A stretch of DNA of 11,466 nucleotides, from assembly GCF_006345805.1 (NCBI RefSeq), contig NW_021826957.1, positions 1 through 11,466 on the forward strand. The letters are read 5' to 3'. Position numbers and translations under genes: made by a program. The notes under the pieces were generated by a model, which worked only from the letters and a program-made list of their open reading frames with translations, was not told the origin of the DNA and made no database searches. Positions within the stretch are counted from its first letter, which is position 1. Each line of letters begins with the position of its first letter. Source of the DNA: Octopus sinensis (taxonomy: Eukaryota). Of the stretch, positions 2,236-4,488 are shown piece after piece.

Positions 2236-2328
2236 AATATTATATTATATAATAAATATAATATAAATAATTATATATATATATAATTATATATATTATT
2301 ATATTATATAATTATATATATATATATA
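2236..2328. repeat. AT-only low-complexity (TA/TTATA) tract
   Basis: Only A and T, TA-periodic. Confidence 0.9.
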
Positions 2329-2661
2329 AAGAAACTGCAGTCTGAGAATTACCGGTTTAGTAAATGTTTTTATCTTCATTTCACTTAATTTATCAAGCTT
2401 CTGTATTCCTAGCACATATTTCGCCTTAATGTACTGATATATGAAAAATATATGGCTTGTGTTAGTAATACCAGCGATTATAATTATTTTTATTTTATCG
2501 CAATTTGATTTGTTTACATATTTCTCGATAAATTATGAGCGCCAGGCGATATACCAGAATTCCAGTGTTGTCGGGACGTTCGGAGTCTGCGCAGTGATAT
2601 GATTAGTTAGGGAGAGTAAATCATTAGACGCACATGCTTCTAGTGAGTCAGGCTCCCAGAA

Positions 2662-2751
2662 AAACAGGGTCTCACTGAAGAATTCTCCCTGAGCAAATAA
2701 ATTATCTTTATTGCTGAAAAGAAGAAACTGCAGTCTGAGAATTACCGGTTT
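2662..2751 (+). ncRNA. Type I hammerhead ribozyme, copy 1
   Basis: UCUCA 2670-74, CUGAAGA 2675-81, stem II UUCU/AGAA plus GCAA(A)UAAA/UUUAUUGC hairpin, GAAA 2724-27, palindrome ACUGCAGU, GUC with predicted cut after 2735, UGAGA 2736-40. Confidence 0.8.
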
Positions 2752-3054
2752 AGTAAATGTTTTTATCTTCATTTCACTTAATTTATCAAGCTTCTGTATT
2801 CCTAGCACATATTTCGCCTTAATGTACTGATATATGAAAAATATATGGCTTGTGTTAGTAATACCAGCGATTATAATTATTTTTATTTTATCGCAATTTG
2901 ATTTGTTTACATATTTCTCGATAATTATGAGCGCCAGGCGATATACCAGAATTCCCTAGTGTTGTCGGGACGTTCGAGTCTGCGCAGTGATATGATTAGT
3001 TAGGGAGAGTAAATCATTAGACGCACATGCTTCTAGTGAGTCAGGCTCCCAGAA

Positions 3055-3146
3055 AAACAGGGTCTCACTGAAGAATTCTCCCTGAGCAAATAAATTATCT
3101 TTATTGCTGTGAAAGAAAGAAACTGCAGTCTGAGAATTACCGGTTT
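3055..3146 (+). ncRNA. Type I hammerhead ribozyme, copy 2
   Basis: CUGAAGA 3068-74, GAAA 3119-22, predicted cut after C3130, same stems. Confidence 0.75.
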
Positions 3147-3449
3147 AGTAAGTTTTTATCTTCATTTCACTTAATTTATCAAGCTTCTGTATTCCTAGCA
3201 CATATTTCGCCTTAATGTACTGATATATGAAAAATATATGGCTTGTGTTAGTAATACCAGCGATTATAATTATTTTTATTTTATCGCAATTTGATTTGTT
3301 TACATATTTCTCGATAAATTATGAGCGCCAGGCGATATACCAGAATTCCCTAGTGTTGTCGGGACGTTCGGAGTCTGCGCAGTGATATGATTAGTTAGGG
3401 AGAGTAAATCATTAGACGCACATGCTTCTAGTGAGTCAGGCTCCCAGAA

Positions 3450-3540
3450 AAACAGGGTCTCACTGAAGAATTCTCCCTGAGCAAATAAATTATCTTTATT
3501 GCTGAAAAGAAAGAAACTGCAGTCTGAGAATTACCGGTTT
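3450..3540 (+). ncRNA. Type I hammerhead ribozyme, copy 3
   Basis: CUGAAGA 3463-69, GAAA 3513-16, predicted cut after C3524. Confidence 0.75.
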
Positions 3541-3844
3541 AGTAATGTTTTTTTATCTTCATTTCACTTAATTTATCAAGCTTCTGTATTCCTAGCACAT
3601 ATTTCGCCTTAATGTACTGATATATGAAAAATATATGGCTTTGTTAGTAATACCAGCGATTATAATTATTTTTATTTTATCGCAATTTGATTTGTTTACA
3701 TATTTCTCGATAAATTATGAGCGCCAGGCGATATACCAGAATTCCCTAGTGTTGTCGGGACGTTCGGAGTCTGCGCAGTGATATGATTAGTTAGGGAGGT
3801 AAATCATTAGAACGCACATGCTTCTGTGAGTCAGGCTCCCAGAA

Positions 3845-3935
3845 AAACAGGGTCTCACTGAAGAATTCTCCCTGAGCAAATAAATTATCTTTATTGCTGA
3901 AAAGAAAGAAACTGCAGTCTGAGAATTACCGGTTT
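3845..3935 (+). ncRNA. Type I hammerhead ribozyme, copy 4
   Basis: CUGAAGA 3858-64, GAAA 3908-11, predicted cut after C3919. Confidence 0.75.
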
Positions 3936-4240
3936 AGTAAATGTTTTTATCTTCATTTCACTTAATTTATCAACTTCCTGTATTCCTAGCACATATTTCG
4001 CCTTAATGTACTGATATATGAAAAATATATGGCTTGTGTTAGTAATACCAGCGATTATAATTATTTTTATTTTATCGCAATTTGATTTGTTTACATATTT
4101 CTCGATAAATTATGAGCGCCAGGCGATATACCAGAATTCCCTAGTGTTGTCGGGACGTTCGGAGTCTGCGCAGTGATATGATTAGTTAGGGAGAGTAAAT
4201 CATTAGACGCACATGCTTCTAGTGAGTCAGGCTCCCAGAA

Positions 4241-4331
4241 AAACAGGGTCTCACTGAAGAATTCTCCCTGAGCAAATAAATTATCTTTATTGCTGAAAAG
4301 AAAGAAACTGCAGTCTGAGAATTACCGGTTT
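4241..4331 (+). ncRNA. Type I hammerhead ribozyme, copy 5
   Basis: CUGAAGA 4254-60, GAAA 4304-07, predicted cut after C4315. Confidence 0.75.
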
Positions 4332-4488
4332 AGTAAATGTTTTTATCTTCATTTCACTTAATTTATCAAGCTTCTGTATTCCTAGCACATATTTCGCCTT
4401 AATGTACTGATATATGAAAAATATATGGCTTGTGTTAGTAATACCAGCGATTATAATTATTTTTTATTTTCGCAATTTGATTTGTTTA

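Follow-up and report, generated by a model that had tools for sequence, protein, structure and literature searches.

Does a tandem array in an octopus contig belong to the non-long-terminal-repeat (non-LTR) retrozymes, and can the hammerhead-like motif that recurs in its units still cut RNA? The array lies in contig NW_021826957.1 of Octopus sinensis, of which we analyzed a stretch of 11,466 nt (11.5 kb), referred to below as the window. A preliminary description of this DNA had read the array as a run of about 5.5 noncoding units, each complete junction of which carries the ordered elements of a type I hammerhead, and had proposed it as a candidate non-LTR retrozyme. We find one array with an ordered hammerhead core, helices I and III, an irregular helix II, and A/T microsatellite sequence on both flanks. 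That the motif descends from a hammerhead retrozyme seems to us probable, and we hold this part of the answer with good confidence; as to whether it still self-cleaves at a useful rate, we find the case evenly balanced. On the whole we lean, slightly, toward reading the array as a non-LTR retrozyme-type element whose plus strand carries, in each unit, one motif derived from a type I hammerhead, self-cleavage included.

A tandem array of noncoding units between A/T-rich flanks

Tandem Repeats Finder (TRF) reported a single tandem array at 2328 to 4494, with a period of 393, 5.5 copies, 97% matches, and 1% indels. Successive monomers measure 393, 395, 394, 395, and 396 nt and are followed by a 179-nt partial unit; the consensus of the unit is 396 nt long and has a GC content of 35.4%. 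The longest stop-free stretch in the unit is 76 codons, and its 76-amino-acid translation found no homolog among 5.8 billion proteins. Copy number, unit length (393 to 396 bp), and noncoding character thus agree with what the preliminary description had claimed. No long direct repeats flank the array and no LTR was found (neither a primer-binding site [PBS] nor a polypurine tract [PPT] was specifically searched for), and the window holds no further copies of the unit.

The sequence CTGCAGTC followed directly by TGAGAATTACC occurs six times in the array and marks the six candidate cleavage sites, at which the cut would fall after C17, between GUC and UGAGA. Their positions (Table 1) are exactly those that had been predicted. 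Since the array begins inside a motif, cleavage at the first of these sites would require a domain-swapped double hammerhead or a cut made in trans, which bears out the earlier suggestion that it depends on pairing with another copy.

Both ends of the array adjoin microsatellite sequence that is 100% A/T, whereas pure A/T 30-mers account for only 1.5% elsewhere in the window. On the right, a 31-nt pure A/T run (4489 to 4519) starts within the last partial unit; the unit's own sequence at this point is ACATATT, so that the junction can be placed only to within about 6 to 10 nt. A/T sequence on both sides is what insertion into one (TA)n microsatellite would produce. The ambiguity of the right junction is compatible with microhomology-primed reverse transcription and is also expected in AT-rich DNA.

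Table 1. Coordinates of the array, its hammerhead-like motifs, and its flanks in the window
Feature	Position	Strand	Basis
Left flank, 91 nt of pure A/T, degenerate (TA)n microsatellite adjoining the array	2237..2327		Sequence, TRF
Tandem array, 5.5 copies of a 393- to 396-bp noncoding unit	2328..4494	+	TRF, monomer alignment, consensus
5'-truncated hammerhead remnant: GAAA, helix III, GUC (C17 = 2342), and the helix I 3' strand; CUGAAGA and helix II absent	2328..2358	+	Sequence, site list
Hammerhead-like motif 1; CUGAAGA at 2675, C17 = 2735; AGAA variant of the helix II 3' strand	2662..2751	+	Site list, pattern match
Hammerhead-like motif 2; CUGAAGA at 3068, C17 = 3130; helix II internal loop variant CUGUGAAAG	3055..3146	+	Site list, pattern match
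Hammerhead-like motif 3; CUGAAGA at 3463, C17 = 3524	3450..3540	+	Site list, pattern match
Hammerhead-like motif 4; CUGAAGA at 3858, C17 = 3919	3845..3935	+	Pattern match, energy calculations
Hammerhead-like motif 5; CUGAAGA at 4254, C17 = 4315	4241..4331	+	Site list, pattern match
Right flank, (TA)n-like microsatellite	4495..4519		Sequence, TRF

The core and helices I and III of the motif

In the numbering of Hertel et al., the five complete junctions all present CUGAAGA, GAAA(C), and (G)UC in this order, which gives an intact core of C3-U4-G5-A6-N7-G8-A9, G12-A13-A14, A15.1-U16.1, and H17. CUGAAGA supplies C3-U4-G5-A6-A7-G8-A9, GAAA supplies G12-A13-A14-A15.1, and the cleavage site is GUC followed by U. 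All 15 core nucleotides are intact, as are helices I and III, and the catalytic center CUGANGA / GAAAY / RUH, in the form used in Suppl. Fig. S1 of PMC7229834, is kept in 5/5 junctions.

Helix I consists of 5 bp (UCUCA/UGAGA). The helix can be drawn as continuing, past a G/AUUA internal loop and a 1x1 loop, with GG/CC and AAAC/GUUU, as in the preliminary description. Helix III, GAAAC-UGCA-GUC, comprises one A-U and one C-G pair (2 bp) and is capped by the palindromic tetraloop UGCA; the 8-mer that runs from A15.1 to U16.1, ACUGCAGU, is self-complementary, and its duplex is worth -11.1 kcal/mol. In both helix I and helix II, 5 positions precede the internal loop. A second 8-nt palindrome, AGAAUUCU, which includes an EcoRI site, spans A7 to position 10.5 in each junction (e.g., 3467 to 3474).

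If cleavage is real, it most likely works through a double hammerhead: weak helices II and III together with the 8-nt palindrome argue that a cleaving motif would be obliged to process multimeric transcripts in this way. In a plus-strand transcript of two or more units, the ACUGCAGU segments of two copies would pair to form an 8-bp intermolecular helix III, and the paired copies would adopt a double hammerhead that cuts after C17. The predicted products are monomers of 393 to 396 nt with 5'-OH and 2',3'-cyclic phosphate ends, beginning 5' UGAGAAUUACC and ending 3' ...CUGCAGUC>p. A host tRNA ligase of the RtcB type would then circularize the monomers, and a Penelope-like enzyme with reverse transcriptase (RT) and GIY-YIG endonuclease activities, acting in trans, may copy the RNA back into (TA)n microsatellite DNA. 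Transcription, cleavage, circularization, and retro-mobilization of the array are proposed here by analogy with the retrozymes of coral, mussel, and axolotl.

Expected frequency of the motif by chance

The pattern CTGANGA-N(20-50)-GAAACTGCAGTCTGAGA gave 5 matches on the plus strand and 0 in 200 shuffles of the window. For a structural estimate, we used a relaxed descriptor. Its elements were a helix I with a minimum of 5 bp; CUGANGA; a helix II no longer than 60 nt, with 4 or more pairs and one basal mismatch allowed; GAAA; a helix III with a minimum of 2 bp and a loop of 3 to 8 nt; and finally U and then H. This descriptor was composed after the motif had been seen and is just permissive enough to accept it. 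It matches once per unit on the plus strand, finds no hammerhead on the minus strand of the array, and gave 0 matches on either strand when the unit was shuffled 200,000 times with its dinucleotides preserved. A factorized estimate gave 1.6e-5 chance matches per unit, or ~41 per Gb at this composition. Among the controls, the validated coral and mussel hammerheads were found and both axolotl ones were missed, so that the descriptor does not accept hammerheads indiscriminately. A strict descriptor, which allowed no basal mismatch and limited helix II to 25 nt, rejects the array motifs.

The shuffles and the factorized estimate make a chance origin unlikely. A relaxed match somewhere in a multi-Gb genome is unremarkable; a match inside a tandem repeat of retrozyme size is remarkable. 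Several features that the descriptor does not score lower the chance odds further, namely the palindromic tetraloop (~1 in 16), the GAAAY/RUH signature, the extension of helix I, and the confinement of the motif to one strand.

Evidence that weighs against an active ribozyme

The results gathered in this section count against a retrozyme that still cleaves itself, and the first of them concerns helix II. In four copies, this helix begins with an A.A opposition at 10.1/11.1 and continues with UUCU/AGAA, a 6x5 internal loop, and an 8-bp AU-rich distal hairpin (GCAAAUAAA/UUUAUUGC, with one bulge). It is 43 to 45 nt in all, ~3 times the usual length, and worth only -5.9 kcal/mol; the basal four pairs include a single G-C and are otherwise AU. 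A type I hammerhead is expected to have a helix II that opens with a Watson-Crick pair, usually G-C, at 10.1-11.1 and ends in a short loop; the array motifs lack this pair. Apart from 15.1-16.1, this is the most conserved helix pair, and U.U is its best-tolerated mismatch (Perreault et al. 2011, PMC3088659), so that the A.A found here should be worse. Copy 1 has a 1-nt deletion (AGAA for AGAAA, 2719 to 2723) that shifts the register of helix II, leaving a bulged A after A9 and four pairs, UUCU/AGAA, that directly abut G12. Other registers for helix II or G12 were weighed by hand, and none restored the 10.1-11.1 pair in the majority copies. The earlier claim of a complete, ordered set of type I elements at five junctions thus holds for the core and for helices I and III, but its "stem II" is abnormal.

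Covariance models do not recognize the motif. A search with Rfam 15 yielded no hammerhead or other ribozyme family in the window at gathering score, and at E<=10 the region 2300 to 4520 returned no hammerhead, only three chance-level matches (snoR14, DLEU2_4, and STnc410). We also built a model, R1, from four retrozyme hammerheads that had been validated by experiment (coral Amil224, mussel Mg353, and axolotl Ax353 and Ax330; Supplementary Table 2, PMC7229834). With filters off, R1 scored the junctions at 6.2 to 6.6 bits (E of 3 to 4), in partial alignments that missed the true CUGAAGA, and ranked another site, 7161 to 7207 on the plus strand, above them as its best match in the window (15 bits, E of ~0.01). 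That site has CUGAUGA but lacks helix II and reads GAGA where GAAA is expected, and we judged it a chance near-match. The likely cause of the failure to recognize the array motif is the 35-nt insertion and the unpaired base in helix II.

Folding energies, calculated for motif 4, are likewise unfavorable to the single motif. The single hammerhead fold, at -9.1 kcal/mol, lies 6.3 kcal/mol above the minimum free energy (MFE) of the monomer, -15.4 kcal/mol. A 7-bp GAGAAUU/AAUUCUC helix hides the substrate strand and dominates the predicted MFE of the dimer. The substrate strand GAGAAUU (e.g., 3526 to 3532) is able to pair with AAUUCUC in the helix II 5' strand, and the resulting duplex is a competitor of helix I; it may work as a switch that governs which fold, active or inactive, is adopted, or it may be a coincidence. 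The double hammerhead, at -35.1 kcal/mol, is favored over two single hammerheads (-18.2 kcal/mol) and over two monomer MFEs (-30.8 kcal/mol), in support of the dimer reading, and the competing dimer fold (cofold MFE) reaches -40.7 kcal/mol. Because the validated mussel, coral, and axolotl Ax353 hammerheads likewise do not have the hammerhead as their MFE structure, folding energy discriminates poorly.

The fold of the circular monomer (MFE of -86.6 kcal/mol, 63% of bases paired) is not unusually stable, with z scores of -1.5 for the plus strand and -1.7 for the minus strand; among 300 shuffles, 22 were as low or lower. In this circular structure AGGGAGAGU (unit positions 271 to 279, e.g., 3400 to 3408) pairs with AUUCUCCCU, the helix II 5' strand (unit positions 341 to 349, e.g., 3470 to 3478), over ~9 to 10 bp. 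Such pairing, which is predicted by the folding model, would hide the ribozyme in a monomer circle.

Comparative support is also wanting. No relatives of the unit were found in the protein collection or, by pattern scans, among prokaryote genome contigs and viral contigs. One pattern match in a metagenome contig fell in GC-rich, nonrepetitive sequence without a tandem repeat and was judged to be chance, and a literature string search with GAAACUGCAGUC and similar strings returned unrelated primers only. Within the array, the differences between copies (2343 to 4494) are nearly all 1- to 2-nt indels, often in homopolymer runs, and may be long-read sequencing errors rather than divergence. They are spread evenly along the unit: 2 to 3 of ~14 events fall in the motif portion, which makes up 23% of the unit, with no sign of constraint. 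Since the copies are 97% identical and differ by almost nothing but indels, conservation of the core carries no covariation or selection information, and since the five motifs are copies of one sequence, they amount to one independent observation, not five. Finally, the window contains no Penelope-like open reading frame (ORF), no RT or GIY-YIG remnant, and no Pfam domain, the Pfam scan having covered ten stop-free segments.

Alternative explanations

The rival that best accommodates these results is a relic retrozyme, in which the ribozyme lost its activity when the 10.1-11.1 pair disappeared and helix II grew by ~35 nt, and in which unequal crossing-over or replication slippage now maintains and enlarges the array as it would any ordinary satellite. 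An abnormal helix II, the failure of both covariance-model tests (Rfam and R1), a circular fold that is not special, and copy differences that show no constraint in the motif are all as expected of a relic, and the high identity between copies fits recent unequal crossing-over equally well. It is harder to see why a dead ribozyme would have kept all 15 core nucleotides, helices I and III, and the 5-position geometry; moreover, cleavage is known, above all in dimers, from hammerheads whose helix II has a mismatch at its base or a bulged 5' nucleotide. We regard a relic as possible but rather doubtful.

A plain minisatellite or satellite that contains a hammerhead-like string by chance, with no ribozyme ancestry or function, we consider improbable. 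It draws on the fact that one observation has been copied five times, on a descriptor composed post hoc that would still find ~41 matches per Gb by chance, and on the absence of recognition by any database model and of comparative support. The expectation of 1.6e-5 per unit and the 0/200,000 shuffles speak against it, the unscored features (palindromic tetraloop, GAAAY/RUH, helix I extension, single strand) push the odds lower still, and the string would have had to arise in a tandem repeat whose size, GC content, and flanks are typical of retrozymes.

Least probable, and in our view very much so, is that the array is no free-standing retrozyme family but arose when a pseudo-LTR (pLTR) or a piece of the 3' untranslated region (UTR) of an autonomous Penelope-like element became tandemized: the (TA)n target, the 35- to 50-nt spacing of CUGANGA and GAAA in some Naiad 3' UTRs, the Naiad remnants in Octopus spp., and a 2026 preprint that argues for a pLTR origin of retrozymes are in its favor, but the window has no RT or GIY-YIG coding remnant in the ten stop-free segments scanned, 5.5 head-to-tail units without an internal ORF are a retrozyme and not a Penelope-like arrangement, and helix III is canonical-like, unlike that of minimal Penelope-like-element hammerheads.

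What survives of the retrozyme reading in the preliminary description is its architecture, that is, unit size, GC content, one core per unit, helix III, the absence of an LTR or ORF, and the A/T flanks. Its ribozyme claim emerges weaker, given an abnormal helix II, the failure of Rfam and R1, and a fold ~6 kcal/mol above the MFE.

Other features of the window

The rest of the window is repeat- and microsatellite-rich noncoding DNA; no long nonrepetitive ORF was found in it outside the array, and ARAGORN detected no tRNA in the window. About 200 bp upstream of the array there is an inverted repeat (1833 to 1961 and 1994 to 2122) with 129-nt arms that are 98% complementary and 32 nt apart. It lies between (AT)33 at 1740 to 1804 and the A/T tract at 2237 to 2327 and looks like a foldback element, or one resembling a miniature inverted-repeat transposable element (MITE), inserted in TA-rich DNA.

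Two dispersed repeat families are present. The first resembles a short interspersed nuclear element (SINE) and includes GGCGGAATTTGAACTCAGAACGTA; its three copies, at 8643 to 8836 (minus strand), 10288 to 10480 (plus strand), and 11404 to 11465 (plus strand), are 90 to 98% alike. It gave no tRNA with ARAGORN, no protein match, and no literature string match, and it may resemble abundant octopus repeats. The second family comprises direct copies at 6085 to 6483 and 7579 to 7938, which are 76 to 83% identical, and a partial inverted copy (7391 to 7564, inverted with respect to 7795 to 7960); each copy is followed by a CA/TA-type microsatellite. Microsatellites are dense, among them (ATCT)30 at 6484 to 6605, (TATC)21 at 10850 to 10932, (CCG)19 followed by (CCA)15 at 9363 to 9461, and (TAC)23 followed by (ACC)25 at 10062 to 10215, and they give rise to long, spurious low-complexity ORFs on both strands.

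Implications

If the motif cleaves, it would add a retrozyme family from a lineage for which we found none reported, and it would show that a hammerhead tolerates an interrupted helix II of 43 to 45 nt with an unpaired base. Censuses of animal hammerheads that are based on descriptors and Rfam would then be undercounts, and the question whether Naiad-type Penelope-like elements lack hammerheads could be reopened. If the motif does not cleave, the array would be a small example of the decay of a retrozyme into an ordinary satellite. With either outcome it is an incremental addition to a well-described class, possibly as a structural variant with a long interrupted helix II, and not a new kind of element.

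Comparison with known retrozymes and hammerheads

Metazoan non-LTR retrozymes are tandem repeats of ~150 to 450 bp with a GC content below 45 to 50%, one type I hammerhead per unit, and no LTR, PBS, or PPT; they coexist with Penelope-like elements in the genome and are widespread in invertebrates, "from molluscs to arthropods" (Cervera & de la Pena 2020, PMC7229834). Their RNA occurs as ~170- to 400-nt linear and circular forms, with circularization by tRNA ligase and presumed Penelope-like mobilization, and the circular monomer is predicted to be stable, with a high degree of self-pairing (PMC7229834). The array falls within these bounds in size (393 to 396 bp, 5.5 head-to-tail copies), in GC content (35.4%), and in its lack of coding capacity. 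An operational rule calls for two or more TRF units in a row, each bearing a complete type I hammerhead motif, and an MFE below -5 kcal/mol (Li, Clavereau & Pollet 2026); set against it, five consecutive units pass under the relaxed descriptor and fail under the strict one, the MFE being -13 to -15 kcal/mol and the hammerhead fold -9.1 kcal/mol. The searchable literature yielded no published retrozymes or hammerhead satellites in cephalopods, and octopuses or other cephalopods are linked to the subject there only in passing.

A close likeness is to Mg353 of the mussel Mytilus galloprovincialis (PMC7229834), also from a mollusc, which consists of tandem 350- to 390-bp repeats with 37% GC and one type I hammerhead per unit. 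Its helix III has 2 bp and a palindromic tetraloop, GAAAC-GCGC-GUC there versus GAAAC-UGCA-GUC here, and its loops, like those of the array motif, are without the archetypal loop1-loop2 contact nucleotides. The two differ in that Mg353 has a regular helix II (4 bp, a loop of 5 nt, and G10.1-C11.1 as a pair) and a helix I of 6 bp; furthermore, self-cleavage (kobs of ~0.1 per min) and abundant circular RNA have been demonstrated for the mussel element. No homology between the two units was detectable (global z = -1.7, local z = 0.7).

The axolotl hammerhead HHR_Amex2 / Rtz_353 resembles the array motif in that the base of its helix II is mismatched and its 2-bp helix III is closed by a palindromic tetraloop (PMC7229834); Ax353, with GAAAC-ACGU-GUA, has the same 2-bp palindromic design. 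Amex2 is active with U.U at its helix II base, and it is weak as a monomer and much better from dimeric constructs (PMC7229834). It differs from the array motif in having U.U and not A.A, a short helix II, a vertebrate host, and an unrelated unit sequence.

Newt satellite 2 and the Sm-alpha repeats of Schistosoma are tandem satellites of a few hundred bp that are transcribed into self-cleaving type I hammerheads, with a weak helix III and processing as double hammerheads. They have a canonical helix II and loop-loop contacts and are recognized by the Rfam family Hammerhead_1; the array motif, unlike them, is not recognized by Rfam.

In canonical metazoan hammerheads, helix I has 6 bp, helix II 4 bp, and helix III 1 to 2 bp with a small palindromic loop, and in tandem repeats these ribozymes work as dimers (Cervera & de la Pena 2014, PMC4209133). 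The minimal hammerheads of Penelope-like elements lie in pLTRs that flank an RT-endonuclease ORF and have 6 to 8 continuous helix II pairs and little or no helix III (PMC4209133). In contrast, the array lacks an ORF, its helix II is interrupted by an internal loop, and its helix III is canonical-like.

Among Penelope-like elements, Naiad offers a further parallel. Some Naiad 3' UTRs contain an "HHR_half_core," in which CUGANGA and GAAA are 35 to 50 nt apart; (TA)n is reported as the preferred target of these elements, a microsatellite bias has been discussed for Neptune, and Octopus spp. are said to contain Naiad remnants (Craig et al. 2021, PMC8557442). The array resembles them in spacing (43 to 45 nt here), in its (TA)n context, and in the occurrence of Naiad remnants in cephalopods. 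Hammerhead helices are not shown for the half core, which lies in the 3' UTRs of autonomous elements; the likeness is suggestive. It is conceivable, though we think it a long way from probable, that the motif is an active hammerhead of an undescribed subtype, in which an internal loop and a ~22-nt distal hairpin take the place of loop 2 and the helix II base has an extra purine, as in the hammerheads of Penelope-like elements. The same long-helix-II design would then explain the half core of Naiad, at present said to be devoid of hammerheads, the array would be a non-autonomous, (TA)n-targeting partner of Naiad in a cephalopod-like genome, and the class would be one that standard descriptors and Rfam miss. 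In its anatomy, the array motif mixes traits of the metazoan and the Penelope-like-element hammerheads described in PMC4209133.

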